Below are positions 21 to 21,105 of a DNA stretch of 64,000 bases, piece after piece. The first letter of the stretch is position 1. Every line of letters starts with the position of its first letter. The stretch covers positions 186,001-250,000 of the forward strand of contig CBFFRP010000028.1 of the NCBI GenBank assembly GCA_965644295.1, read 5' to 3'. The translations under genes and the position numbers were made by a program. A model generated the notes under the pieces. It worked only from the letters and a program-made list of their open reading frames with translations, did no database searches and had not been told where the DNA came from. This DNA comes from Paraphysomonas bandaiensis. Taxonomy: Eukaryota; Protista; Chrysophyceae.

Positions 21-3000
21 TCATTTTCTTAACATTGATTTGCATTCTTGTACACGGCGAAGAGCATATTTCAGTGCCGGATGGCATATCAAATTTGCAT
101 TTCTTTTTTCCGACGTAAAAACTCTTTTTTCTTCGCTGTGACCAAGTGGTTCAATCGCAGCCATAGAGCATTCAGTGCTTGTTGACTGCAGATTGTCAAT
201 ACACTTCTCTAACTCAGAGAGTCTGTGTGAGGCATTCAATCTATTTTCGTCAGATTTTTCAATGTCTGTCGTGAGATACAACAGGGCCTACAAGAACATT
301 TAGTTTCACCACATAGCATTTAGCAATGCGCTATACCATTTCCACATACTCCCCTATATCGAGCAAAGTAGCTTGTGAACTAAGCGCTAAACCAGTACGA
401 TGTGCGGGCGTACCGGGCCGAGACAATAGCTTCACGCTCAATCGCAGAAGCTGGTACACATATTACAACTACGATGCACAGACGATATATTGGTAAGTTA
501 CCGCAAGAGGAATGGGAAGAACATTTAGATCCATCCCTGACCGTGCTCCCCGCTGTTTTGATGGCGAGAAAACATACGATGATTTAACATCCGGTGACAA
601 TCTAGTAGAAGAATTATAACATGGAATATAAATAAACTTTGCAGAACACCTCTTGCCAGTATCGGCTTTTATAGCCACTTCCGAAGTTTTCTTCCCTTGG
701 CTACTCATGCGAGTAGGTGAAGTGGGAACTCCGTTGGATCCAGGCCGCAGTGATAAGAACACAAGTAAAATTGCTGATGCCAACCTCTATAATTCCAGTT
801 AATCTCAAAAAGGACTTACACCAGTCACAACTACCTGCGTAATGGTAAAATCTCCACTGCTGTTGCAAGCAACCCTTTCGAGGTGAATCTGATAATATAA
901 AAATTGCTTGAAATGAACCCTAATCAATTTATATAGTCGCACCTGAAAGTCTCCTTTTCTCCTGACAAACACGTAGCGATCATCTTTTCCTCTCAACTTC
1001 CTCCCATGGAACCGTGGCTGATTACTGGAATGAGCAGCGACGACTGTCTCGATCATTTCCACTAAGCATGTGTCATCACCCACAGAGCTATCATAATCAT
1101 CATCATCTCCTTCTCCTACCACTGCCAAGGTCTGCCCGTGAAATACGGGGGCATACCCGTGTCCAGGAGCAGCTATGGTGGCAGTGCTCTTCTTGCTGGC
1201 AGATTTTTTCGACTTCGTATCAGACACAACTGAAAGGCTGTCATCAATCCAGCCTCCACCACGCCGGAACTTCAGATTGTGTACCAATGACGTGCCCACT
1301 GCAGAAGGACCCGTAGCAGAAAACGGAGAGTGCAGCTGCTTCTGAACCAGTTGGCGCCTCTGTTGACTTAATTCCTTCTCCAACCTTGCATGTGTAAACT
1401 TTTTATGTAAATACACCACAATCTAACCACCCACCTGTCTAAAACCCACGAATACGATGCAGACAAGTGTTCTGACATACGAAGGTCCTCTAGTAACTTT
1501 CGAGCGTCATCATAAGAGTTCTGAACTGCGCTGACAACACCGCTCAAAACAGCGCTGCGTAGTTGAAGCATAGACTCGCCGATATGCCTGTTGCATTTAG
1601 TGCGTTAACAGTGATTAAATCAGAGCGCAAGTTCGACTAACTTTAAAATTTTGATGTCACGATCACTAGTGTTTATGCCACAAGTCTGCTCTGCGCCCCG
1701 AAGAGCTTTTCGTAGTAATGCAGCTGATGGAAGCAACGAGCTTTCGTGTTTCCATTCTGTCAATAATCACTTTTAACTAGCATAGCAACTCTTAATAAGT
1801 CGTAAACCTTCGTCATAAGAAATCGTGGGCAGGACTGAGTCCAATGCCACAACCAAATCCCTTTTCACAGCGCTGTCGCATATCTGGAATACACACTCAG
1901 GTGTATGTACACTTTGTATTTTTACACACCTCTACAAAAGCGTCCTCAATCTCAGACGCAGCAATAGAAGCAAACATATCGTTCCCTTTCAGGCTGCGTA
2001 CTCTCCCCAACGTATGCATAACCATTTGTACATCACCAATCTACAAAAGTGTCAGCGATATGTGGCAAAAGACAATGATACCTACTCTAAGATATTTCCT
2101 CAGGTCACTGATAACTAATGCGGTGTAATAAACACGTGCACATGGTTCGGATTTAATCCCAAGATGTCGCGCAACCCGAATAGCCCGTTCAATAGGTATA
2201 GATACAAGAGACCGGTTGGCTGGTGATTCTACAAAATAACAAAAATTATTCACTGAGTAGATAGTGTACAAATTAATACCCGGAATCGATACTGGTGACA
2301 CTAACTTATCCGAAGTAGGTCGCAGAAATCCCCTAGACAAATATATCGGTAAGATATACTTTATAGTAGCATTGAGAACCACCTTTCCAGTACACATTTA
2401 ACAATCCTATGATATAGCTCATCTCGTATTTGTAAAATCTGAACCATTGACATAATGAACAGTGGAAATCGATACGGCAAACTTATACCTCGGTCTCCAC
2501 TTCCAAAAGTAGTTCTGAAGGGAGATTACCAAGCAAGCTAGCAACGCTTTCTTCATCAGCACACTGTGCGCCGAGACATGCAGAAAAGTATATTTCGCGA
2601 TGAGGGATATCCCTAAAAAACAAAGCGTATGAAGAAAGAAAACTGAAACTGACTCATACCTATACTGAGACTTGAATTTTCCTACGTCACGTATTCGTGT
2701 CGTGTTTTCTGCCGAAATCACACCAGGAGATAACAAACTACTCAACCCAGTGAAATTGTTATCCGATTGAACTGCATCATGTACACTGATTGTAAAATCT
2801 TTTTCGCTAGCACGGGACGACAAATGACTTCGATTCAGTACTTCGGATTCGTTCCTTTCAGGAAACACTCCTCCTGCAGTTGGTCACAACTAAACAATAA
2901 ATACACAACCCTACCTGATGTTTCCCTCTTCCAGTCTCCTCCCAGTATTTCTTTTCCATAATCAAGTTTGCGAATGCGTCTTCCCAAGTGTTCCAGAGCA

Positions 3001-6000
3001 ATACCCAATCGTTCAAATGAAAAGACACTTCTGTCAGCAGTATCTACATCTGAATCTATTGTTGCGGCCCAGATATTGCTGCTTTGAGAGTCCACGTCAG
3101 TGCTGAACTTGGACTCGCGCTGTTCCTCACGTGCAATACATTCTAGAATAGTGTCCGCCGCTTCATTTGTTCCCCATCTTCCGCCCTTCATAGCAGCTCG
3201 CAGACCTAGTAACGTAACCGCATAAGAAATAAGAAATAAAAGTTAAGAACAATACACGGAACACACCTCGAATTGCACTAGCATTAGCTAGAAAAAACTT
3301 GATAGAATCGGAGCATAATTTCGGGTCAACAGATGCCAATGCGCTATTGAGCTGAAAAAGCGAAAGTTGCTGAGTATCAAACATACCAGGTCTGGCACGC
3401 CCAAGTCCTACAGGCAGTTTGAGATTCAGATAGCTCAATGTTAACGTTCTACCGTTGTACAAGCAATCACTGATGCGTTTCAAAGTTTCAAAAAACGAGA
3501 TCGCCCGTTTGACAAGCAGCAACTCATCAAGTGCACATGGAGATATATTTCGAAGTTCTATGTTTTCCGTTTCTTGGACTAAGCGGCAGTAGTCGGCCAT
3601 GAGAATGGATATCCGCACAGCTTTCAGGCACTCCGCAGAGTAAACAATCTACATATGGATGAAATAAATCACCACATACGAGGGCACACACCTGTTTGTC
3701 TTCAGCAGATAGTTTAGGCGAAGAACTAGCAGCTCGCAGAGCACTTAGCAATACGACAATGTTTGTATTAGTTGTGTCTAGTGTCATGTATGAGCCTACA
3801 TAAAGGTGATAGGTCAGCGACTTGGAGTAGACTTCACCGCAAGAAAACCTGAAATCCTGTGTAACCTCATTGCTTCAGTCAGCGATTCGTGCATTCGAAT
3901 ATTCGCTTCAGACATTCGTTGGATAGCGGCAACCTGTTTGCATATAAGAGCACAACGATATAAAAAATAACGCCCTACCTCATGCATAGCCTCAGGTGCA
4001 AGATCACTCGTCTCGCTTAGCCAGCATCTTGTAACACAAAAATTATCGAATCGCACAGTATCATTGCTAGAAACACCTGATACTTGTCCAATCTGCAAGT
4101 TTCAAGCCGCGGCGAAGATTAAGAACCTTTTCACACATTATATATATAAGTTACAATAACGGAGAAATAAAAAACCTTTTGTGCACTTTCAAAGAGAAGT
4201 GACGTGCGCTGGCTACGCTGTCGAACACTGGACGCAATATCAACAACCTATGTAGAAAGCAATACCAAAATTGATCAAGTCATAATAATGAGTCATTCAG
4301 CTCACATCCTCCAGCTCTTGAGTATCAATGGCGGAAAACTTTTCCGATTCCAAATAATCCTGACCATGAGCAAGGCCAGCCACGAGCCGAACTTCAACCT
4401 GTTAAGAAAAACTTAAGCCGATTCTAGCATTCTAGTCCAGCATTGAACCTGCTGATTCTGAAACTCTCTTTCCACGCGCTGAACCTCTACAGATATATGA
4501 CGTGGCATTGACTCTGTGGTATCATAAAAACAATACGTCCTACTTATTAATTTCAGCAATAATAAATGTATCGTACCAGGTCTTTCATGGAGCAGAAGGA
4601 ATGATACTGAAGATACATCAGTGCTACCGTCATCAACCATGCCACTTATGTTCTCATCAGTACTCTTTTGATTATCCGTTACAGTCTTGGAGTCTATCGA
4701 ACTTGAGGAAATATTTCTAGTGGAACTTATATCGGATGCCTCACGAGTAAACCTCATTAACACATCAGACGAACTCCGCGATAATGGGGTTGATGTAACA
4801 ATGGGTTGCGTCAACTCACTACACATACATCAATCACGAAGCATAAATACGCTGTACTCACATGATATCGCCATCGAACCACTTATTGGCGTCTATGGCT
4901 GACTTTAATCTAATCAAGAACTTGCTGATGCAAACTTTTTGTGACAGCTCATCTGACTCGACGAGCTTAGCTTCTTCCGCAAGTTGGATAGCATGCTAAC
5001 ACAAATAATGAGTGTCCGACATCTAATTCAAAGGCAATTTTACCTCTAGAAGTGGAAAATTTATAAAATAAAAATACGGCCTCGTGTCGTCAGGATCGAT
5101 TCCCACTGGAAGCAGTGCTGACTCGCCATATATTGTGGTAAAACGGCCATTGTAACATAAATGTTCTTCAATGCGTTCCAATGCCTGAAATTTGAAATTA
5201 TTCACACATACAAGGTCATCATATGGACAACATACCAAATTATGAGCTTTTATATCTTCCCCCAAAGTGCAAAAGCTCTGATGAAAGGAAATTATACGTG
5301 ACAAAATAATATAAAATAACCGTTACTTACAGATATAGCACCTGGGCAAGATGGAAGAGCATCCGGTCGCTTATCTGGAGATATTAAATCGTCCATTTCC
5401 GACCAACTCTCAGTCATAAGAGCCATCTGTAGCTTGAGTGCCCACTTTCCCACATCGACAAGTTTCTGTCGCCGAACGATATGATCAGCTCGATTTTCCG
5501 AGGATTGGTTATCAATTCCAGTCATCAAGTAGTTGATGTATTTCTGGGCAGGGCTCGTATCATTATACTTATCGTCACATATGGCACCTTCACAAGCCAT
5601 TTCTGTAATCAGCAAACTCAACTCGCTGAAAGCACTAGCTAGGTCTATAAACATTTGTTGACGACCACAATTTTCTCGCAATGTACCATCTGCAGATCGC
5701 CCCAGTTCGCGTACAAGATATTTTTCGCACACTGCACCAACACATTGCAGACGATATGACAAAAGCTTCTCCCGAATATGCAGCGGGATATAACAATGGG
5801 TCGCAACATCAACTCTATCTAATACGCTCATGCATCTGTCCACATCACTCCAATCAATTACATCAAGACCCGATAATTCATCCTCTCTGTCTGATTCGAA
5901 CGACAAATCAGGAGCACCAATTCCAGCCAGCAACCAGCTACAACAAATTTTTACACGCAAATAGATTTTGGTAATCATAGACCACATACTTGATAACTTG

Positions 6001-9000
6001 CAGTGCCCCTTTTACTCGTCGAATTTCAGGCGTAGAATTCAAATGGATCTGTAGCTCCTTATTATCGTTTTGCAGCCTTGTAAACAATACATATAGGTCT
6101 CTCAAGTTACCAAATGATGTCATTATACAACGCCCCAAATCACTGTTGATTTTTTCCATCCTGTCTACGGCGTTTGTACCTGTTACTGCAGTAAAGTTAA
6201 TGTCGATATCAACAAATAAATATTTTATTTCACACATTTTAGGAGTTTGGAATCGTCTGAATCAAGAAGGTTTGCTATGAGATGGGGAAAAGGCGCTACA
6301 AAGGTTTGATTGTCATCGATGCTTTTTCCTTCTTCAGAAGTTTCTACAACATCTGTTTGCAGCGAGCAAAGGTGTTGGAACAGTGAATTTTGCCTACAAA
6401 CAATTGGTGTCAATATGCCATAGAAAACATTGCACAGAATACCACTCTAATATTGCATTCCTTCGTTCCATGGCCACTATTGATCGTAGGTAAGTCACTG
6501 GGTGCAGAGCACATGATGGAACACCAGATGAGAAAAGAGTACTCCAATCTACAGGCAACATGGATATCCAGCTAGATGCCTGGAAACAAGTTATTTGAGT
6601 ATACGGTTCCAGATACAAAACAATCTTACATCCAGCAGTATTGGCAAGAGCGAACTTGAACCCAACGAATCTTTGTTTATGTGACTCGCTTTCCTCTGAC
6701 GTTGAAACTCAAGAAATTCGTGAAGAAGTAGCAGTCGCTTATCCCGTGTGTCATTGCTATTGTATTCATTGAGAACTGCTTGTGCAATCGCACCTAAAGG
6801 GCTCTCTTTCTCAGCGGAATTGTTAGACATCGACGCAGTATATTCACGTCGTGGGGTGTTAATATCAAACACCATGTCTTCTGCGTAGTGGAGTTCCTAC
6901 GATTCAAAGCGTTACGTCTAATCATGTAAGTAAAAACATCACCTCTTTTGTCGCTTGTAAGAACTCTCGGAGACGATACTCATGAAGAAAGCTCATAAAC
7001 AGCCCTTTAAGTGAATCACGATTCGATAGAGTGATGATAGTAGATATGTCCATAGGCCTACAATGATATAGAAGGTAAGAATAGCCCTACAGTCCGAAAA
7101 TCACAAATCAGTACTTCATAATATCCCAGGCATTCAGTTCTTGGCAGAGAAGGAAGTCATACACACACTCAACAGCCCGCATGTCTCTGACAATGGAATC
7201 ACTTTGAGAAAATGGCCTGCATGGAATACAAGTGAACTGACAAGTCTAATTCAAACAGCAATTAACCTTTCATAGTTTGCAGCACGTAGGATTGGGCTCA
7301 CATCAGTAGATGAAATGTCTATTCTCGCCCCATGATGATATTTTCCTATTGACGATGACCCATCTGGACCCGGTGCCACCAAACTCCGATCCTGCAATTT
7401 ATCCAAAAGCAATGACTGAATTAGCTTACCCACCATTCGATTCCTCAAAGCTGAATAAACTGCAAATATCTCTGTACTTCCCACATTCAAATCTGGATCA
7501 GGAATACTGTAGGTAACATATAAGTCATAAACATAAATCATACCACATTCACATGGGAATCGCACCTCTCAAACCAAACATCAATCAGCGCTTCCACGGA
7601 ACTTTCTTCCGACTTTTCAATTGCTGGGGGTGGGGACAACGATGGGGATGGTGACTTGTACAAAACATCAGAGGATGCAATACTTCCATCTTCGTGCTCG
7701 CTCTCGACACTTTCTTCACCCAAAGAAGATTTTGGTAATGAAACAATTGACTGTTTTCGCATCATTCTCGCCTTCGCGGAAAATTGCTTTAAAGTTCCAG
7801 ATGTGGAAGGCCGCGACATTTTCCCATCTGATCGAGGAATTGATCGGGGAATATCAACACGATTTTCAATCACTCTTGTTAACGAGTCATCCATGTGAGA
7901 CATCGCAGTACGGCATTCAGACTCTCTCGTCCATTTCCCTTGACATGCAGCCCTTCTAACTCGCAGAACTGATACATAGCAATCAGCAAGGTACCACAAC
8001 AGACATCACCAATCGCACCTAGCTTAGCTCTTTCTAATAATTCCTCGGTATCAGGGGGTAATTCACGATTGCTACTAATCGGTGGCTTAACGACAAGACC
8101 AGACAATGCATCAACAGCAGCCTTGTTCGCCGCATACTTCTCAATAAATGTTTCTAGTCGATCACAGACATTCCCTTCATGGGCACACTCTGGAATAGCA
8201 CTGTCACCTCCGCAACCCCCTGATGCTGTGTTTACAAGTGACTCATCAGTATGTCCACCCGAAGACGGCAGATTCATCTCAGAAATGGTGTCGGAATATA
8301 TATTTAGAGCAGCCTGCATGTCATATGTGAAAGTAGAATAATTCAAACCAAGGTTTTACCACTAGTCTTCGGTGGAATTCGGTTATCATGCTACTATCCC
8401 TCGCATATAGAGCTTCTTCTTTCATTTGCACACAGGCTTCAACCAGAGATGTTCTAAATAACGCATAGGTTAGCTGTACTACAAAAAATAACACATAGCA
8501 ACCGTGGACATATCCAACTTGGAAGGTTCAAAAACGACACAACAGCCATATCAGAGCGATCGAAATCAGCAACATTTCTCTTCGAAGTGTCTGTTTGTTC
8601 AATGGAACTAAGCTCTAAGATTTTGAATCTGCTGTTGAACTCTTCTAACTCCGATAAAAACGATGCAGATTTCATAATGGCATTCTGGTCCTGATTTTCT
8701 TGAAACTGTAAACGCACATCCATGAACGATGCATACAGCCTTTGCAATGCTAGCAAAAATCTTCCCAGGCCAGCAACAGAATAAGTTGGATTGAGGGATG
8801 ACGCCGAATTCTTCGAAGAACGAAGTGTTCTTTTCGATGAAGATACCAGGGAGGAAGCGCTGCTATCATACTTATCCGGACTTACACGTTGAGCAGAGGT
8901 AAAAAATTCCGTCACATCAGCTTGCCACACTTCACCTTATATATACAGTGACAGAGCTATGTTAACGACGAAAAAAATATATATGACTCTACCTCGTGTA

Positions 9001-12000
9001 TCGAATGGTACAGTTGGAAGCTTCGTGTCTACAAGTGAATCACCTTTGTCCTCGTTATTATCATCTACAGCTGCTTCATCTGCATATGTGGTGTCGTCAA
9101 TGTAGTGCTCACTGCAAGCTTCTATCACTCCCTTCTGAATATTTCGAACAATTCGTTGCAATACATATTTTAAATGCCCCACAAATACTATCCTTGCAGT
9201 CAACATTCGTATGACTGAGTAACCTGGAGTATCATGACGGCTTGACTCAGCATTGAACTCTCCCGGAGATGATGCGTTAGCTGTGCTTTTTGAAACAAAC
9301 TTCTTAGAGTCCGTTGATGTTAAGGCACGTAAATTCGACGTGCAGGACAAAATTTCCGACACCGTCTCCCGTAATTCTTCGGGTGACAAAGGATCAGCAG
9401 TATCACTATCACACATACCCATATCATCCGAATCCCTTGTCAAACTATTTAATACACTATCTAACTTTGTGATAAAACTCGAAAGATCTTGCGACGACCC
9501 AGAGACAAAATTGACAATAGGGGTAGATCTGTAAAGCTATGAGTTACATCACCTATTGATTAAATAACTTACAAAGTCATATCGCCATTGCCATCAGGTA
9601 CTGAACTCCTTTCGCTCCCACCACCCAACCCAAATGCGTAATCTGTCAACCCAAGTTCTTTGAATCGTTGATGTAAAGCGTAGAAATCGCAGCTACAAGT
9701 CCGACACAGCTTTGCAAGTTCAACGACTTTCTCTTCTACTCCAGCTCTAGCCCCACGCATAGACACCACGGCAACTTCTTTCAAGATATGCAGTCTAGCA
9801 TACACATTTACAGAAAACAACATATGTATTTATAAAACCTGAGATTAGCATCTTCTAAACTGACTGCATGCGCAACTATTCTTGGTAGCACATTTCCCTC
9901 AATCATTGGTAGGCGTTCTTGCGGTGACTCTAATTCCTCCTCACTGAATTATCCAAACCAACATATATCAGCAAGATCTTTACATTTCAAAGAGCAACAT
10001 ACCATACGCTTACAGTTTCAGAGATGGCCATCTCAGCTGATGTATGTCGCTGCTTCAAAATTAAAGCCACTGTATAGGTCTGCATTTTCATAAAATCCAT
10101 CCATCTTGGGTCCACAATTGGAGATAGCATACGCTTCGAATCAGCGGGATGAGAGAACCTCTGATTCATGTATTCATCAACAGATTCAACCGATTCGTCA
10201 TCCGAAATTGAAAGACTAGTTACACAACTGTTGGTCAGTGCGTGCACGCACCGCACCATGACTTCATATGCTCGCCTAACAAACTCTAATTTGCACAAAA
10301 TTTCTTCAAGACCTTCATTTGCACTTGTAATTAGTTCATCCGCAGGAGAATACTCAGCAGCAACTTCTTCGAAATCAGAAAGCAGCGATACAATAGCTGA
10401 ACTTATTGCTTTTATGCCGTTAACACCATGGTATATAGTCTCAGTACACATATCTACAGTATTCATAACATAAACAAATGAATAAACTGTCTTCAGACAC
10501 CGAAGTATATTCGCTGCATCCGGATGTAAAGCCATACGTGTGATACGATCAATATACACTTTCATCGCAGACGCCACTGAAAAATCCTTGGACAATTTCG
10601 ATGACGGCGGACAATGTGCGAAAGTGGGAAATTGGTAAGGTTCAATCGCTGAACAATACGAAGTTAAATAGTCTACAAAATATCGAAATAAGCCTTTGGA
10701 CTGCACAAATCTTACAATCGTAGAGTGAGCAAGCTGGTGCGTGAAGTCCCAACCAGCACTAGATGGTACTGCTGGGACAATTTGCAATGGGACATCAGTT
10801 ACACTATGTCGTCGATTTCGGAGAGAAGGAACAATGCAGTCAATGCCTTTAACTGAGGACCTCCGTCGAACAAGTTGTTTGAATAGCTTTGGTGCCTCCA
10901 TCATAGCTGAAATATCATCGTCACCGTCAATAGACTGTTGTAAATCTACACTACTGGTGCAACTATATCGCTCATCGACTTGAGAAAAGAAAATAGAAGC
11001 TGTATTGGTGTATTCGTCCGCCGCGTTGTACACAGCATCTGTCGACTCAACTAAGGCCTGCAGTATATCTCGTTCCAACAAACCTCTTGTCTGCGTGAAC
11101 GCAAATTTATTGACGGCAATCTGAAATAATGACGCCGTTATACAGCAGATAAAGTAGTACGAAGAGTTTCACCTGTTTGGCTTCCTTTATTATATCTCTT
11201 TCAATCCACTGCATACTCCATGGCGAGTAATTCGGTAAGCAATATCCTAATTGTGTGAGCAGCAAGAGCGCACACTTTTGTTCAAGCATCTTAATCGTCT
11301 CTGCAATATTCGCACGCGCGGTGATTAATACTTTTGACAACGGGTTGTTGGCATTTCCTGTGTTACTACGTCCCAGTATTTCTTGAACTGTGAATGCCGT
11401 AGTAGGATCCAAGCTATCTCGTATGAACACGTGTACTTTATCGGCTGCTATGCATATCATTTTGACGGCTTTCGTATTCGATCGTAGAGTATAATAGAAA
11501 TCGACAGAAGACGAAATAGTCATGGCTGAATCCAAGGCAGGGTCAAATATTTGCATCACAGCACGGGTTCGAAGAGTTTGAATATTGAGCAAATAATACT
11601 TCCCAGACTTTCTAATTCGGATTACGAGCCTAGATCTTGAAGATGAGCCGCTGTGAAGAGCAGAAAGTATTTCAGATAGGGCACTTGTACCGTGAGGACC
11701 GTTCCAACAACCACATACGTCGTTTATAACCTAAATAGCAAAGACAACGATCAGACATACAGAATACTGTCAATGGGCTGCTCACATCCGCATCGCCTTC
11801 AACTAAAACATGCCAGTTCTTGACAACTTCAAGGATTGAAATTTTAACTTTGTTCACCCCAGTCACGGAACCTTTTAAAAAATAGAGGGTACCACTATCC
11901 GCAAATCCCAGTCGAAACGAAACAGTAGACCGATATAGTCTTTCCAGACCGGTGTTGACAGCGTACAATACCTCAATACACTTTCTACAGAAGTCGAAGA

Positions 12001-15000
12001 CATTCAAAGTTTCGTCGATATTACATTGGTGGTTCTTTAACGTTGTTGTATCAGCACCAGTGTCTTTAACTTTAGATTTATATCGTAGTATAGACGTGGT
12101 TCGTTTTGGGACAGTGAAGTTCTTATTGACAAAAGGATGCATTAAGTTCAGTACACGCTCAAAACACCTTTCAATATCTCCTACTAGCTTCTGCAAACGA
12201 AGATTTTCTTCGTGGGGAATATTTTTCTTCAACAGCTCACAAAGTATATTTATTGCATGCACATCTGAATGAAAGACAGGCTTCGCAGCGGGCATAATTG
12301 AGTTTCCAACTTCATCCTTTTCATTGCGATCGGACGGTGATCCCATCAAAACGTAAGGCGTTACCCAATCTTCCGTCATGCAATACAGTCCTCTCCATAG
12401 AGTGTTCAGCATGTGCACCCGATTTTTCCATTGCATAAATGGAATTTGTAATTTGCTAAACTCAGGTGTACTTTTCCTACTGGCCATGTAAGCAATACAT
12501 TTGCCGATATTCTGCAGCGTGAAGTGCAAGTGAGCACGACGAAAAGAAAGATCTCGAAATCCAGGAAGATTCTTATTTATGACGACGTCGTTTCCCCACT
12601 GCTCTGAAGCCGCATTTGCCACTCCAGACCCGCACATTATGGATTTTCGAGACAGAGGTATGTGTTGAGGGACCGGGAGTGCGTTTACCCAGCGTAGCAG
12701 CTTATCGTGAAACCAGTCTGGTACCACTTCAGCCTCTTTGTCAAGTTCTTTCTTGAATCGCTTAAACTCAGCACCCATCTGAAGTTCAGACGCCCAACAC
12801 AGCTCACGAGCACATCTCATACATCGAATACAACTCATAGTTTCCAATGGCACACTCTGCTCACCAGTGGCATTCACTAAATATGTCGTTTTCGTCAAGT
12901 AGTCGTCCAACACTTGCCTACAACTAAGGTCAGTCATAATTAATCTACCTTACAGAACATATACCCACCGCTTAAAGCAAAGTACTTCTAGAAGTTTGCA
13001 GCCTTCTGTGGCCAATGCAGATAGCTGATCCAGTAAATGACCTCTCTGAAAAACTAATACTTGTTCTTGTAATGAATGAAGAACCTTCGGTGAAATATCG
13101 GCTATCTGTAGAAGTGAGCTAAATGCATTGAGAGATTTATCGAGTATGCAATAGTCTGAATTCGATTGCGCAATCGATAACAAATTTTGCAACTCTGATA
13201 CAACCTACATAAAAGGTAATTAGAGTTCATTGTAACCATAACTGACCACAAACCGTTATAAGAGCAATGCCAGATACTTTGTGAGGGAATTGACTGGCTA
13301 TATGTTGAGAAATTTCCTGTTGTCGCTGAGCATTTTCAACATTGAATTCAACTTCATTATTATCTTCTCCCCACCCGACAACTGGCATAGCAGCCGCTTC
13401 CTCAAGAGTCTCCACAAGTTGGCTCAATTTGCTGGTTTCTGAGACAAATGCGCGTTCTTCAAGAGCAAAGTGTGCAGTGTTCGTAAACTTTTGCATTTCT
13501 TCAAGTACTTGGCTTGTCCTTTCTCGAGCTGCTGCTAGGCGGGCACTGTTCGATGAATCTAACCTCACAGGCTTACTCTTTTCCGAGTCTTGTGAAATAT
13601 CTCCACGACTTGACGATGCTCGTCGTAGTGATACTGAAGAAACAGAAGCTTCATTCAGTACAGATTCCCGAAGATTAAGCAGCGACTTCATTCTTCTCTT
13701 ATTGTCGATTGTTTCAGGAAGAAAATCACTGTCCTCAAGAGATCCATCATCAATCTTTTCCACCAACGTACGCAGCATTTGTACTCCAAGGGGAGGCGCA
13801 TAAAAGGATGATGTACCACGAGAACCAACTTTTCCAGCCCGGGATACTATACTAAGCTGGACGTCAGATTGAGCAGCTATTGCCTCCTTAAGGCTATGCA
13901 TGCGTTGGTCATTTAGATAAGATATTAGGTCCTTCTCCTCATCACTGTAAGGAGAAATAGCCCGAATCGTCGCATCCATCTCTTCAGTATGGTGTATCAC
14001 ACCTAACCAATCCTTTTGCTTTCTTAACACACGCAAATTCCTCAAATCATCTGCGGCCTGAATCCATCGTAGGATGTCTTCTTCACCAGTCGCCGCACAT
14101 GCTGCTTTTGCCTTTAATATTACTAAAAATAATGACCGCGTATCCGTGGAGTTTTTAGCAGCAACATATAATGAATGAACTATTTGATGAGACCGTACGT
14201 ATGAAAGGATGCAAACCATTTGGTCACTATTTAAATCACGCTCTGAAGCGTCCTGCACGACACTCTGCATTGTCAAAAGTGATACTTCATGTGTTCGCCC
14301 CAATTTAATAAGTTTTAGACAGTCCACGACACTTATGCATATTTTCTTAAGGCCCATACTCTCGTCGTTGTGACAACCAACCGTATCAGCTGACGCTAAA
14401 GCATTGGTAAGAAGAGAAAAGTGAATCAATGAAGGGGTAGGGTTAAATTTATGGGTATTAGGGATAGTTGAGATCTCAAGTGTTGTCAACGCTTCCCGCA
14501 TCGCTTTAATAAGTTTCATATGTGCAACTTCGTTCTGTACGAGAAGAAGTTCGTCGTTGGCCTCAAAAAAGTCTTTCAATTCATCCTTTTTTGTCTCACA
14601 CAGCACTGCTGCGGCGTCCCAGTCACTATTTTGTACAGCCTGCCTAATAGAAATCATGGCAGAACTCATCGCTCGTAACTCCAATACATGGCGGAAGAAA
14701 TTATCACAAAACGTATCCACGCTTTGAGTGTCAGGAATATTCGTAAAGTCGCGTACAATAGTTATGTCTTTCTCGAGATCTGAACAAGTACTGGTGTGTA
14801 ATGAAGAAGCGTACTCCATATCTTTCATGTGAAACTGAACATTACCAACCGACCCACTTATACAACGGCAAGATATGGATTCTTGAAACAAAAAACTTAA
14901 TTTGCGCCGCTTTAGATCAGATATCACGATGTCTACTTCAGCGACGTTCGATCGGGAAAGAGACGTACGCGAAGCATTAGATAGCTGCTGAATTGTTAAC

Positions 15001-18000
15001 TGCAAACCATCAACACTTTTGAGCTCATGAAGTGGTGAGCGATAAAGAGGCTTGACTACATTTCCTACCATGTAATTCTCTGGACGGCTTATACTATTCA
15101 ATATACCATTTTGTGCATCCTCTTTGTTGATTTCCAATATTAACTTCCTCGCTTTGAGAAGGATTCTTTCCGCTTCCTCCGCTTGTGCAAGCAAATTTCT
15201 TGGGCATCTTGGTAGCTCTCGCACTGCAGACAAAGCCACAGAAAGATCTTCTATACCTTTTTCTTGCACTAATACCTCTACGTCTGCGGCGGAAGTAAGC
15301 TTCCAATATACCGCACAACCAGATAATGCATTTCTCAACTGAATTCCACATTCCTGAATTTGTAGCAGCAACGAGCAGAACCGAATTTCAACTCCATATT
15401 CTGGAACTTGTGTACGAGCTGGGTGATGCTCAATCGCATTCAAGAGTTCCTTGCTCTTTGAAATAGCTATTATGCACGCCATTAGCATAAATACATTACA
15501 TTACCTGAGGAATGCTTTCTGACTGCATCAAACGGCGAATATTGAGCGATTTATCAGCTAGATCTAACATTGAAGTAAATTTACTTTCATCTAAATTCAT
15601 TTCTTTAGCTGTCTGAATAATGTCTCTGCCAGACTTGATGTCACTGGTCAAAAGTGACCAATCTCCGGATTCGAAATCAAGAAGCGAAAAACACGGCGTT
15701 ATACACACAGTTCTCAGCTCAGAGAGCGTGAGGTAGTACTTCGCTAGCCACCTACAATTATCGACCTCCTGAACAGCTAATGGATACCGACACTGCATTA
15801 TATCAACTAAATGAGGAGAGATGGATGGCAAATAGTTTATTAGCTCGTCCCATGAACGTCGGTTGAACAGATGCCTGATATCTAATATCACACCAGCAAT
15901 TTCTATTGCGTTTGTAGCACATACAGAGTAAGGACGTTCGTTATTTTCACGTGCCTCTGAAAGTATGTGCTCAATATCATGTGTTTCAGCTATAAAATCC
16001 AACGATACAGATTTCCTGATGTTGCCGATCGACAACACTGCGTCCAGAGAGTTTATTACATTCCTTTCTGCAACCCAGTGCTTGTATAATTTGAATTGTG
16101 GCCGAATTACGTTCATAAATTGCGGCTCGTCTGAGCAATCTGTACCGATCAAAGAGTTGGCAACATTATCGAATATCTAACACAGAAAAATATTAAGGGA
16201 TACTGTTTCACGCACAAAACACCAACCTGAAGAGATTCTTTCACAGCATCACTATCATCAGCTGCTGCATTACTTCTGCATTCCACCAATAGGCCACAGA
16301 AGGTTAACAACGCTCGACATTCTTTAGATCGCAAATTAGATTGGTCAATTTCACCAATCGTATTTTCAATATCATCAACAGAATCAAGATTTTGTGGTTC
16401 CAGTTTCCCCGACACTGTATCAAAATAGACAATGCTACTTTCCACTGCCTTACACATATCAGGTACGTACTGCGCTACTTCTTTCTCGATGTCGCGCAAG
16501 CGTGTTTCGGCAGTCAAAAGAGCTGCCTCGGCACCCTCAACTAGGGACTTATATTCTGCCAACGTCGTAATTGCAGTTTGCAATTGCACGCCAGTTAGGT
16601 CTGTAGAAGTCTGTATTCGATTTACGGAATCCTCTGCCATCTGCAGTTTTTCTAGCATATTGCTGGCAGCTGTCACCCAATCGTGCACAAAATTCATTTC
16701 ATGTGCCGCTGATATCTGATTCCTCAAAGTTTGTACATCATTCGAAGTCAGTGGACCAGATCTTTTACCGTCATCCAGTATAGCAGCAATGTTCTGAGTA
16801 ATTGCTTGTTGCTTGCGCAACATTTCTAGATAGTTAGTTTCTCTCGTTACTATGTGGAGAAGAATATCTTTGTACGAAAGTGTATTTAAACAATGACAGT
16901 GGCTTTTGAGTTCGATTATGCTATTTTCGGCGTTTTCAAGGTCACAGTCTGACACAAAGGAATCATATGCCCTTGTACAATCCCTATTACACGTCGACAG
17001 GGTTAAGAGGTTAAATGACACTTTGACACACATAGTATACAACCATACCTGATTCTTTTGAAAATTTTTCGAATTCGACAGGATCGACACCACTTCTTAA
17101 TCGTATCTGCAGCACCAAGTTCTAATATTTCTTTCTCATTTTCAAGGAAGCGAAACTCATTTCCCTTCATGAATACCATCGTACGCCCAACTTGCAAAAA
17201 CGAAACTTTACTTGAGTGTACACCCTGTATCGTACTCACAACTTTCTGGGCGAGCTGACAGCTGGAGTCATATTCATTCTCGTCGCTGACGACATGAGGC
17301 CAACGATACACCTCAGGGAGCAGACAACGGTAGCGATCGATAAACTCTTCGTGTTTCAGCCTAAAGGGCAGGCCAGACTGCTGAATCTTTACAACTTCGA
17401 AAACGCCGCTGTACAAAAGCTGGCGGTGAACCAATGGGGCTTCAAAATCACGGGGAATACACCTCGAGCTAGATTTGATGCAGCGAACAAAATGACTCTC
17501 AGTGCTACGTAGCATTCCCATCAGTGACGCAAGCTGCGTTTGAAACCCTTTAGATAACGACGGCACAGAGCTACGTACACTGGTTTTGCGCATCCCACTT
17601 TTTTCCGGAGACACGTCATGGTCAACAGAGTCCGACTGAGTCGAGAATATTCGACCAACAAGTGGGTTAGATGATGATATCATCGCGCCGACGAGGTCAT
17701 TCGACAGAGTTTCAGTATTTTTCTCCATAAAGTTATTAGGTATGTATGTCACAGGGCCAGCATAGTGGCTGACATTGAATGAGTCCTTCTGTATAGAAAA
17801 GGTTAATATCTGGTCGCTATCTTTGATGGCTGGAATATTCAAACGCTTCATTTTGTCAAACCAAGTTTTTGACGATCCCCTTGGAATACGGGCTTCTTCG
17901 TCCAGACTCTTAAAGCATTCTTCTATCTTCGCAATTACGGGATCATTAGGTTTGAACAGAATACTTTCGCATTCGATTTCCTCAGCTTCATATAACTTCG

Positions 18001-19648
18001 TCTCCGTGATGAAAATAACAAAGTTGAAGTGATTTTGTAGCATTTCATTGCAGTAATTAATACACAACTGTTCAAAAGAGTTCACTTCAAATATTTCAAA
18101 GCCGAAAATATCGAGAAGGCCAATCATTCTTGTTGGCTTACTGGATTCTGGACATTTGTTATTCTCATTGATCTGAGTAATAATATATTCAAATATCTTA
18201 TCGTAAAGATTTCGCGCAAGTGAATCTCTTGTTTCCAGCGCCTTTTGAGTATTCAATCGAACAGTGGTGATACTCTTTCTCATTCCACCTGTAACATTCT
18301 ATGACGTCATCCTTATCAATAAATACATGGAACGCAGCATCTAGTACAGCCAAATTGCGTTGTTATATACGATATATATACCTGACTGAAATGTACGTGT
18401 GCATAGTGCCTGGCCAAGAGTTCCAGCACTCACGCCTAGCGCCTCCGCCGCCTCTGCAAAAGATCTTCTCGACTCATCGCTTGATGTGTTTACCTCTGAA
18501 GATTCTCCCTCATCAATACCATCAAAATCAATATTTCCTAGGACCAAAACAGCACCAACCACACGAAATATCTCAAGTATCACCTCTGGCTCAAACCCCA
18601 TGTCAAGAAACGCGTCGAACATCTCTTCGAAATTATCAGCATCGTTGAGATCCTTAGCCTCCTGTGATCCTTGGCAAAGATACTTGTAGTCGGTACTGTT
18701 TGGACGATTGAAGAGGTGAATATCACGAAGCATATCCTCTGAACCACCCCGAAGGATCTGATAGAACACGTGATAGTTGCGTTCCTTGATATCTCTTTGT
18801 GTAACGCGCGATTTCTAAAGACATACAAATTATCGGATTACGCAATTATTACATACGAACTCAAGTATGAAATATCTTTTTAGATTATTTCTTACCTCAA
18901 GCAAATAAGATGTTATTTTTGATCCTTGGATGACATTGTCCTGAGAGAATATCAGTTCCATCCACTTGCCGAATCGTGAGGAGTTGGGATTACGTATGGT
19001 TTGTGCGTTTCCAAAAGCTTCCAGTATAGGACTGGCGGCTATAATTCTACTAGCAATTTGAGAGACTTCCGTATTTTCTACATCAGTCGATACATGGCGC
19101 CCTCCGCCGGAGACTCGAGTGAGATAGTCCAGACATTGCTTCGTCGCCTCTGTCTTTCCAGCACCAGATTCGCCAGATATCAACAACGATTGGTTCTTAC
19201 CGAACGAACACATTGCTGAGTATGCTCTTGCTGGAATTAGATATACATGTGCTGGCAATTCTTCGTCTTTGATGTGCCGATATTCATTGATCTTTGCTGG
19301 ACCATAAAGGCCTTCAATCGTCTCAAAAGGATTCAAGGCCATTAACACAGCACCGATAGATGTGTATATAGCTTTTCGCATAAACCTTATTCTACTAGAA
19401 TTTAGAATAGTTGCATCGTTTACTTGTGACAGTGATATCAAATCATTAACATCCTCCGTCATTACAGATGGGTCTTCTATTGGAATACACTCAGATTCAG
19501 CAATCGTTATAGATTTCTGATCATCCAACAACACAAGGGACAGAGTTTCATCTTTTCTTGACGTAAGTTCTGCTGCACACCATATGTGATCAGGATGCGG
19601 ACACCAGTAATACTCTTTTTTGGTCTTCTTCACTATTTTTCTGTTCAT
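21..19648 (-). CDS. Giant unconventional myosin heavy chain (~5,600-5,700 aa, ~51 introns)
   Basis: The motor has an N-terminal SH3-like start (YWCPHPDHIW), P-loop GESGAGKT, switch I NPNSSRFGK, switch II DIFGFE, SFEQLCINYCNE and HFVRCIK, followed by one IQ-like neck (AADTIKKWCRSCRIRK). All downstream minus-strand ORFs join in frame via phase-compatible GT-AG introns (e.g. 18815-18895, 18289-18381, 15456-15504, 11731-11785, 7969-8018, 4997-5044, 288-335) to a TGA at 21-23. The motor call is near certain; single-transcript continuity is inferred. Confidence 0.85.
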
Positions 19649-19960
19649 TGTTACAATGGAGGAGACAGCACAACACTACGATTATATTCAGATACAAGTA
19701 TCAAACATGAGATCAGTCATTCCATGTGTCAAGATAAGACCATTGCGGTCACTGAATGTGTCCTTGATAGTTTGCATTTCAGCAGGAATATGGATGTGTG
19801 TCTCCTCTTTATATGTGTGAGATATGCATAGACGATATGTGTATATGGGATACAGCAGCAGCAGACATGGAACGATAGATACAGCAGGCAGGAATAGCAG
19901 TACAGCATATACTGTATGTAAAGGTGTACACATATCACAATATGGCAGTTGACTTCAGTA

Positions 19961-20268: not shown

Positions 20269-21105
20269 ATGGAGGCTAAAGGGGATGGTAGACCACCCAT
20301 GTCTCTCATGGACGCTAAAAGTGCATCGTATGACGCGGACTCGAAAATGTCTCATGGATTCTCTTCTAAACCTGCTAAGAATGTTGCGGCGAAAGACTAT
20401 CCATTGTCTCCGACAGATAATTTACTTTCTCCATGTTCACAAAAGCTGAGACGTAAACGCAGCAAGAAGTTGTCAGAAGACAGTGTGGAATACTGGCGCC
20501 TACCAGATGGCATAGATATTATACTGGGAAGTACTTCTATAGCGAGAGCGAATATATTGAGAGAAGTGGGTTGGGAGTTTCGTTGTGTTAACCCTCGTAT
20601 TAATAAAAAATCTGTAACTTCTAATGACCCTTTCCGACTCCCTGTGCTTCTTGCGAAGGCAGAGGCAACGGCAGTCTTGGAAGAGATTCAGGGAACCACC
20701 GTTCCAACTGTTATCATCACGACTGATCAAATTGTACTATTCGAGAACGAAGTCCGTGGTGTACCCGTCAATGAAGATGAGGCGAGAGAGTTCTTGCTGT
20801 CATACCACGAGGGTAAGATTGTACAAATCGTAAGCGGTGTTGTTGCTACGCATATTCCCAGTGGTCGCCAGAGCGCCGAATTAGATATTTGTACTATTCA
20901 TTGGAATGGTATTCCCGAAAATGTTGTGGAGCGTTTCTTGGCTACCAAGCATATGATTTACGAGAGTGCTGGGGCGATCCTCATCGAAGACCCGGATTTT
21001 TTGCAGTACGTGGATCACATAGAGGGACAACTTGACTCGATACGAGGGCTACCAGTCGCGGCCATGAAGCGGACCATTCGGTCTGTTGTTTCCAGTGATA
21101 TATAG
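20269..21105 (+). CDS. Maf-family (nucleoside triphosphate pyrophosphatase-like) protein with N-terminal Spo12-like motif
   Basis: Intronless 278-aa ORF with Maf motifs IILGSTSIAR, IITTDQIV, SAGAILIE and DSIRGLP. The N-terminal extension contains LSPTDNLLSPCSQKL (20404-20448). Confidence 0.85.
   Translation: MEAKGDGRPPMSLMDAKSASYDADSKMSHGFSSKPAKNVAAKDYPLSPTDNLLSPCSQKLRRKRSKKLSEDSVEYWRLPDGIDIILGSTSIARANILREVGWEFRCVNPRINKKSVTSNDPFRLPVLLAKAEATAVLEEIQGTTVPTVIITTDQIVLFENEVRGVPVNEDEAREFLLSYHEGKIVQIVSGVVATHIPSGRQSAELDICTIHWNGIPENVVERFLATKHMIYESAGAILIEDPDFLQYVDHIEGQLDSIRGLPVAAMKRTIRSVVSSDI

Follow-up and report, generated by a model that had tools for sequence, protein, structure and literature searches.

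Does the minus strand at the start of the window (the 64,000 nt of a Paraphysomonas bandaiensis contig analysed here) encode one giant myosin or several genes that only seem to be joined, and, if it is one gene, where does its product stand among known myosins? A sequence-only reading had assembled one intact gene from many small open reading frames, joined by phase-compatible GT-AG introns with no stop or gap. Myosin tails determine what the motor does.

Our final splice-aware dynamic-programming model resolves window 21-19648 as a single gene of 54 exons and 53 GT-AG introns (Table 1). The reading frame is 16,887 nt long and encodes a protein of 5,628 residues (630 kDa). The introns are short (40-93 nt, median 50, 2,741 nt in total), with 23, 11 and 19 of them in phases 0, 1 and 2, respectively. 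The minus-strand open stretches chain unbroken from 19675 down to 24, and the dynamic programming needs no in-frame stop or non-GT-AG intron across the whole interval. The earlier figures of ~51 introns and ~5,700 residues were thus close, both being slightly off. On the true strand the control path crosses with 46 exons, a coding fraction of 0.88 and a score of +796; the one shuffle that was crossed took 139 exons, with a coding fraction of 0.49 and a score of -1080. The opposite strand and two further shuffles were uninformative as controls, because the path ended at a stop just after the fixed start.

Stops or frame changes require each of the 25 introns above 5240, and no hidden in-frame introns were found there at the gaps of the orthologue alignment. 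The longest intron, and with it the longest spacer, is 93 nt, leaving no place for a hidden intergenic region. The acceptor of exon 2 at 18814 is fixed by the YLLE/KSRV motif, and the same continuity assigns exon 2 to the motor. Exons 26-39 were placed from contig record coordinates, GT-AG enumeration and orthologue spacing; exons 30-38 abut or lie <=10 codons apart in the orthologue's uninterrupted ORF. A first solution for 3649-4576, with exons of 20 nt and 11 nt, was rejected because the orthologue alignment spans the supposed intron. Lowering the intron penalty in the dynamic programming put too many introns into the motor, and that solution was likewise discarded; some of the additional introns turned out to be real. 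Exon 6 has no other match in the same genome, and as judged from that genome the gene is single-copy.

Table 1 Features of the giant myosin gene, in window coordinates.
Feature	Position	Strand	Basis
Whole coding region	21..19648	-	5,628 codons + stop; model, spliced contigs, colinear orthologue
5' leader, ~117 nt (putative)	19649..19765	-	X2 contig arithmetic; in-frame stop 19678-19676 excludes an unspliced N-terminal extension
Start codon ATG	19648-19646	-	final model
Exons 1-3, motor domain	18896-19648, 18382-18814, 17049-18288	-	Pfam Myosin_head (PF00063), 210.5 bits (profile 1-177) + 293.1 bits (profile 316-679), cut-off 33.3
N-terminal SH3-like domain (Myosin_N), residues 10-53	19490..19621	-	23.2 bits, below Pfam cut-off 27
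P-loop GESGAGKT, residues 159-166	19151..19174	-	sequence
Switch I NSSRFGK, residues 222-228	18965..18985	-	sequence
Switch II DIFGFE, residues 455-460	18095..18112	-	sequence
IQ-like motif (residues 792-809), interrupted by intron 3	16983..17101	-	read from sequence by eye
Exons 4-5, proximal tail	16227-16983, 15500-16176	-	introns forced by stops; weak colinear orthologue matches; no Pfam
Exon 6, 733 full codons	13254..15453	-	tail piece searched exhaustively and folded
Exons 7-12	12969-13204, 11786-12917, 11173-11730, 10003-11120, 9839-9943, 9573-9794	-	introns forced by stops/frame changes
Exons 13-18	8993-9528, 8519-8935, 8360-8478, 7976-8313, 7566-7925, 7267-7506	-	introns forced by stops/frame changes
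Exons 19-25	7115-7216, 6943-7057, 6630-6896, 6443-6579, 6236-6393, 5990-6185, 5331-5937	-	introns forced by stops/frame changes
Exons 26-32	5236-5277, 5044-5184, 4862-4995, 4577-4818, 4449-4513, 4306-4398, 4176-4247	-	RNA joints by count; placement inferred
Most conserved block of the tail, residues 4528-4766; candidate site for partner binding	3406..4577	-	identity to L005
Exons 33-39	4077-4126, 3979-4027, 3849-3933, 3692-3795, 3453-3648, 3267-3407, 2915-3205	-	RNA joints by count; placement inferred
Exons 40-47	2660-2873, 2489-2612, 2383-2438, 2280-2332, 2086-2228, 1930-2040, 1808-1883, 1642-1756	-	joints read directly
Exons 48-54	1435-1587, 943-1384, 835-888, 650-786, 502-601, 337-450, 21-287	-	joints read directly
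Stop codon TGA	21..23	-	transcript contigs extend to window 25, 19 and 7

Spliced contigs of the gene are present in three runs (X1-X3) from three studies. Their joints read CT..AC on the plus strand and hence GT..AG in the sense of the gene. Direct reading gave 15 joints and one loose end; 12 further joints were obtained by count and positioned by contig arithmetic and gaps in the orthologue alignment. The 15 introns bounding exons 40-54 (14 between them and 2874-2914 above exon 40) have their joints in X1, X2 and X3 contigs, and all are GT-AG. X2 contains a spliced contig 17,016 nt long that runs from the stop codon upward. Once 10 adapter letters and the stretch between the ATG and window 19 (16,889 nt) are subtracted, 117 nt remain, which would fit a 5' leader. 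X2 was automatically guessed to be "probably DNA", and the run type of X1-X3 is without record. The 27 clean GT-AG excisions, together with a sole genomic copy that carries the introns, suggest that the X1-X3 contigs are cDNA; taken as such from its splicing, the X2 contig is the ~17-kb spliced mRNA that had been proposed as a check on the gene. Read placement covered window -799..5200, and within it the 3' 3.6 kb of the X2 contig was placed. Above 5200, transcript continuity is indicated by the length of the X2 contig, by the orthologues and by the sampled words from 9700-19690, 0.82-0.83 of which are contained in X1-X3.

The motor is canonical in its motifs and looks catalytically intact. 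The P-loop (GESGAGKT), switch I (NxNSSRFGK) and switch II (DIxGFE) are all intact, in agreement with the sequence-only reading. The two Myosin_head matches lie in exons 1 and 3, and the middle of the profile falls in exon 2. The single IQ-like motif of that reading is seen as well. Exon 3 alone gives no Pfam IQ match at E<=0.01; intron 3 interrupts the motif, so each exon carries only part of it. When exon 3 is compared with solved myosin structures, all classes score alike (150-182 bits; best, myosin VIIa, 181.6 bits) and none stands out, whereas the orthologues score 443-453 bits.

Behind the motor, no Pfam family is detected in the 12 tail exons of ~90 residues or more, in P0001, P0006, P0007 and P0009, or in six L005 ORFs (E<=0.01-0.1), the scans having been run exon by exon and ORF by ORF, such that border-spanning domains could escape. 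MyTH4-FERM, DIL and SH3 tail domains are among the families without a match in these tail exons and orthologue ORFs. The tail contains 11% leucine, 10.9% serine, 6.9% glutamate and 4.8% lysine, and a crude, uncalibrated scan of composition and heptads finds no 35-residue window with >=55% charged residues in it, suggesting a composition that is not coiled-coil-like. An AF2 model of exon 6 (733 tail residues) has a pLDDT of 84.3 and consists of helices of <=35 residues packed in bundles and five beta-hairpins; a pattern of long helix, hairpin and helix recurs five times. The distal conserved tail, modelled through L005:21865-24153, reaches a pLDDT of 41.6, and this model is therefore unusable. 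On our reading, the tail would be a long chain of short-helix bundles, interspersed with small beta-hairpins and serine-rich disordered linkers. The exon 6 model has no convincing structural match by Foldseek against the PDB, by a wide structure search or by a shape search of a predicted-structure atlas. Likewise, nothing convincing came from protein language-model look-alikes of the tail or from profile searches with A1 and A2 against solved structures.

An exhaustive HMMER search with exon 6 against 1.84 billion representatives returns only 11 clusters, all of them environmental, Logan or JGI pieces. On each of the four foreign contigs inspected, Myosin_head ORFs immediately precede the tail relative on the same strand; from gene order, motor and tail stay linked in at least four further uncultured protists. 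Prokaryote-style gene calls on these contigs split the orthologous locus into many ORFs. Colinear tblastn matches on L005 (7401-25337, 18 kb) extend from exon 1 to residue ~5400. Most of exons 7-25 match L005/L006 colinearly, and exons 11, 13, 16, 17, 19, 23 and 24 are without a match in this comparison. Identity to L005 is highest in the block of residues 4528-4766 (50-67% in exons 30, 32-34, 36 and 37; 36-43% in exons 31, 35 and 38). In the motor tree, the giant myosin forms a clade with the motors of L005, L006, L007 and L008 (support 100/99, stem 0.78), and all 16 paralogues from its own genome (G000) that the tree includes fall outside it.

The same genome encodes a second giant myosin on contig C400 (motor 109920-112011; 5,288-residue open frame 111121-126984). 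Here too, ~5,000 tail residues lacking any known domain come after a canonical motor, and this motor is the sister of the five-motor clade (92/92), with 39% identity over the C-terminal half of the motor. Unlike the window gene with its 53 introns, it is one huge exon, and neither blastp nor profile comparison reveals any similarity between the two tails.

Taken together, the locus is one spliced and expressed gene, as the sequence-only reading had it, whose architecture is conserved and whose motor falls in a separate clade. It is probably best explained as a single-copy gene for an unconventional myosin of 5,628 residues, with an SH3-like N-terminus, an intact-looking motor, one IQ-like site and a non-coiled-coil tail. 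That the interval instead holds a normal myosin and one or more separate downstream genes, only seemingly joined, is very improbable. The splitting of foreign loci by prokaryote-style calls and the assembly of the transcript in pieces in X1 and X3 would suit such an arrangement, but a single X2 contig equals in length the whole model plus the 117-nt surplus, with its 3' portion placed on the window; no spacer exceeds the longest intron and no in-frame stop interrupts the frame; and the order of motor, then tail, is the same in all four other organisms. A tail that dimerises or forms filaments as a class II-like coiled coil, or that repeats one recognisable unit in tandem, is improbable too. 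Both AF2 models, confident or not, are almost wholly helical, and the fivefold helix-hairpin-helix pattern of exon 6 hints at a repeat. However, the helices of the confident model are short and bundled, charge-rich windows are absent, comparison of hhalign profile windows with the whole tail alignment gives no off-diagonal match of >=40% probability, and an HMM trained on the five hairpin segments recovers those segments only. The earlier claim of a ~4,800-residue tail free of coiled coil, MyTH4-FERM, DIL and SH3 therefore holds for the pieces scanned with Pfam, for the composition and for the exon 6 helices.

What such a protein does is a more tentative matter. A one-IQ lever and the lack of a dimerising coiled coil lead us to favour, at somewhat short of an even chance, a single-headed tension-bearing tether, in which the motor would hold actin filaments and the huge helical tail would act as a scaffold docking a large structure or organelle. 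The likeliest docking site would be residues 4528-4766, as their conservation suggests. The alternative, a cargo transporter working in teams, seems rather less likely.

A tail of ~4,800 residues, ~85% of a 630-kDa motor protein, has no counterpart in any domain library, among solved structures or in a predicted-structure atlas; it is nonetheless expressed, stop-free over 17 kb, and kept in order and in linkage with the motor across several protists. The giant myosin thus offers a defined entry point to the unexplored actin biology of heterotrophic marine protists. It also probes the upper size of single-chain motors; to our knowledge, the largest familiar myosin is human myosin XV, of ~3,500 residues. 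Finally, it carries a warning for annotation: ORF-based or prokaryote-style calling breaks genes of this kind into dozens of "hypothetical proteins", the form in which all relatives of the giant myosin are at present filed.

The giant myosin may, on its sequence, represent an undescribed class. Kollmar-type class criteria ask for a supported clade of motors from several organisms and a shared tail architecture, and both are found here. We read the protein as a class-level lineage with a new scaffold tail, a placement made against solved structures and the 16 G000 paralogues. The chances appear evenly balanced that the gene founds an unnumbered class, its tail architecture being without a described relative, and that with its C400 sister it marks a "giant myosin" clade, whose heavy chains would exceed all other recorded myosins in size, from marine protists that are non-photosynthetic and have silicon-transporter-like genes. 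Membership of an already catalogued class or orphan group (for example in CyMoBase), which would add a member to that group instead of founding a class, is rather unlikely. Kollmar and Muehlhausen (2017; PMC5583752) list 79 myosin classes, 287 orphans and "dozens" of unclassified stramenopile myosins, and their tail sequences were curated manually, which leaves room for a giant without domains in that set. Against this, the relatives of exon 6 are all environmental, Logan or JGI pieces, "Paraphysomonas" and "Chrysophyceae" are absent from the species table of that paper, and a full-text literature search for giant or largest myosins gave nothing relevant. In addition, the tail signatures of stramenopile classes XXI (WW/PX/Tub), XXIX (CBS/PB1/TM), XXX (PH or PX) and XXXI (ANK-PH-Aida_C2) are absent from the tail exons and orthologue ORFs scanned with Pfam.

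Among known systems, class XXIX, which occurs in every stramenopile sampled and is described with "very long tail domains" (Odronitz and Kollmar 2007; PMC2375034), resembles the giant myosin in its very long tail, but its Pfam tail families are absent from the giant myosin tail pieces scanned. The solved myosins (VIIa 9dfs, XV 7udt, Va, Ic, X and VI) have the motor fold and catalytic motifs in common with it, whereas their MyTH4-FERM, DIL, coiled-coil and PH tails do not occur in it. Class II-type myosins differ in their long heptad coiled-coil tail, which the crude sequence test and the exon 6 model do not find here. We also count large alpha-helical scaffold proteins (nucleoporins, Bro1/ALIX, the RZZ subunit and TPR-like proteins) among the closest known systems.

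The final model of the giant myosin gene comprises 54 exons and 53 introns (median 50 nt), with 16,887 nt encoding 5,628 residues. The sequence-only reading had proposed an intact giant myosin hidden in small open reading frames (ORFs), and the model and spliced contigs bear this out. In a six-frame listing, minus-strand open stretches overlap end to end along the locus. A splice-aware dynamic programme, which scored codons by log-odds and splice sites by donor and acceptor weight matrices and allowed GT-AG introns only, gave a fewest-intron parse that is free of in-frame stops and has 44 introns, each 40–138 nt long. Intron 1 was given the acceptor that restores the conserved motif YLLE|KSRV. 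In control runs, the true strand was crossed with 46 exons (coding fraction 0.88) and the single shuffle that crossed used 139 exons (coding fraction 0.49); most controls met a stop codon right after the fixed start and are hence uninformative. No in-frame hidden introns were found at orthologue alignment gaps above position 5240. The joined protein was used for frame checks, composition, and mass; searches were run exon by exon or with orthologue ORFs.

Coordinates of the gene and associated features (window positions unless a locus or protein is named)
Feature	Position	Strand	Detail
Window	G000:C28:186001-250000		
Giant myosin gene	21-19648	-	
Overlapping open stretches	19675 down to 24	-	
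Stop codon	23-21	-	
Upstream in-frame stop	19678-19676	-	
Intron 1 acceptor	18814	-	
Exon 6	13254-15453	-	733 full codons
Spo12-Maf gene	20269-21105		divergent
Query for run search	9700-19690		
L004	-799..5200		
Single-base differences	239, 413, 2122, 2133, 4966		L004: 1039, 1213, 2922, 2933, 5766
67-bp array	L002:1165-3102		-8835..-6898, outside the window
Ubiquitin-like genes	L005:6579-6854; L006:614-889		opposite strand to myosin
L005 ORF compared	10001-19075		3,024 codons
EF-hand-like loop	P0006 residues ~2920-2945		
Candidate docking site	residues 4528-4766		
C400 giant myosin	G000:C400:109920-126984		L025, L026

An in-frame stop lies upstream of the reading frame. Beyond the terminal stop, into the left flank (L002), the coding score of a forced path flattens, and ~2 kb passes before another long open stretch appears on the minus strand. 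Farther out in this flank, a 67-bp unit is repeated in tandem (28.9 copies, 98% alike) and gives way to a 48-bp variant present in 3.3 copies; the array accounts for a ladder of 66-residue open frames in all frames. The upstream neighbor here is a Spo12-Maf gene, whereas in both foreign contigs, L005 and L006, a 91-residue ubiquitin-like gene is located just upstream of the giant myosin orthologue.

X1–X3, three runs that come from three separate studies and have a common organism label, contain 0.82–0.83 of the sampled query words, and three runs of one further study (X6–X8) contain 0.93. Contigs of X1–X3 and X6 were compared with L004, which covers the 3' 5.2 kb of the gene only. There, X6 has one unspliced contig, and the X1–X3 contigs contain 27 joints, all 27 being CT..AC on the plus strand. 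All 15 joints with listed positions, and one loose end, correspond to GT-AG introns of 41–54 nt, several of which excise in-frame, stop-free sequence and are invisible to ORF logic. The 12 further joints, counted with positions unlisted, were placed using contig record coordinates, GT-AG enumeration, and gaps relative to the orthologue's uninterrupted ORF; after placement, exons 30–38 abut or lie at most 10 codons apart in that ORF. X1 has contigs of 2,177 and 14,861 nt, X3 has one of 9,892 nt, and in X2 one contig, beginning at window position 19, reaches 17,016 nt. From the ATG to this position the model measures 16,889 nt, compared with 17,006 nt for the X2 contig without 10 adapter letters, and the 117-nt excess fits a 5' leader. 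The X2 contig thus has the length of the spliced ~17-kb mRNA anticipated earlier, with the library type of X1–X3 off record, X2 rated 'probably DNA' by the tool's guess, and contigs unable to show transcript ends. The window differs from all four runs at five single bases, indicating that the assembly strain is slightly unlike the sequenced cultures.

The protein belongs to the myosin superfamily. Pfam assigns Myosin_N (below cut-off) and Myosin_head to the first and third large ORFs, and the sequences GESGAGKT in the P-loop, NSSRFGK in switch I, and DIFGFE in switch II are all intact, as expected of the canonical motor read from the sequence. A single IQ-like stretch, interrupted by intron 3, follows the converter.

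The tail is rich in leucine and serine (E 6.9%, K 4.8%) and has no charged-rich 35-residue window. An AlphaFold2 model of exon 6, the tail piece used for searches and folding, with eight homologues (pLDDT 84.3, pTM 0.58) contains bundled helices of ≤35 residues, five short β-hairpins, and two disordered linkers. Both results agree with the non-coiled-coil tail suggested previously. Internal repeats were not found in the tail at the sequence level; the long helix-hairpin-helix recurrence in the predicted exon 6 structure is structural only. A model of the best-conserved distal tail was unusable (pLDDT 41.6). No Pfam family was detected at E ≤ 0.01–0.1 in 12 tail exons, four homologous proteins of ≤3,024 residues, and six orthologous-locus ORFs; profiles of two tail regions retrieved no solved-structure relatives, and language-model features revealed no recognised look-alikes. 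In the L005 tail protein, an EF-hand-like calcium-binding loop (D-x-D-G-x-G...) is visible in the alignment; Pfam makes no call.

When 1.84 billion cluster representatives were searched exhaustively by HMMER, exon 6 had 11 protein relatives, at 21–43% identity; each is an unnamed fragment of an ENA, Logan, or JGI assembly. In each of the four contigs inspected, that of the most distant relative inspected among them, the tail relative is immediately preceded on its own strand by Myosin_head ORFs. L005 is colinear with the giant myosin exons from residue 14 to ~5400 over 18 kb. It has far fewer introns, with one ORF uninterrupted as against 53 introns of ~50 nt here; L007, the closest relative, is also apparently intron-rich, with many short ORFs. 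Motor identity is 54–55% to L005 and L006 and 75% to L007. A word search with an L005 tail ORF found four further relatives, 67–69% identical to it; one of them belongs to a culture transcriptome collection. The giant myosin is an expressed, intact, and conserved chain of a motor and a giant tail.

In the genome, about eight loci give weak half-length matches to the silicon-transporter family (best 89 bits), and there is no match to light-harvesting protein genes (Chloroa_b-bind). This gene content suggests that the organism is non-photosynthetic and may handle silicon; it fits a colorless marine protist better than a photosynthetic diatom.

Because the lever is short, with one IQ, and a dimerising coiled coil is absent, the motor is probably single-headed. 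Such a motor would favor tension holding or ensemble work over hand-over-hand walking. The tail would be built like a scaffold, of folded helical bundles strung via disordered linkers, and residues 4528–4766, mostly 50–67% identical in distant orthologues, are the likeliest candidate docking site. Tension holding and a scaffold-like build would suit a tether or scaffold, the role we tentatively favor at somewhat short of even chances. Ensemble work would suit cargo transport by many motors together, which we consider less likely, and the remaining probability falls to some other role.

The C-terminal half of the motor matches solved structures of classes VII, XI-like, I, XV, V, X, VI, and II about equally (150–182 bits). 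In a maximum-likelihood tree of this half, the giant myosin and four foreign motors form a clade (100/99) on a long stem. Among the sequences gathered, there are a supported multi-species motor clade and a common architecture, by which Kollmar defines a class. The giant myosin does not fit the tail definitions published for stramenopile classes XXI, XXIX, XXX, and XXXI. Beside the numbered classes, 287 orphan myosin sequences have been catalogued (PMC5583752); no paper was found on giant myosins of comparable size. Among ~40 myosin loci in this genome, exon 6 matches only itself, and the closest paralogous motors are 38–39% identical. The sister of the clade (92/92) is a second giant myosin of this genome, on contig C400, with a motor split over two frames followed by an uninterrupted 5,288-residue open frame. 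The two are alike in their sister motors but differ in their tails, which share nothing detectable.
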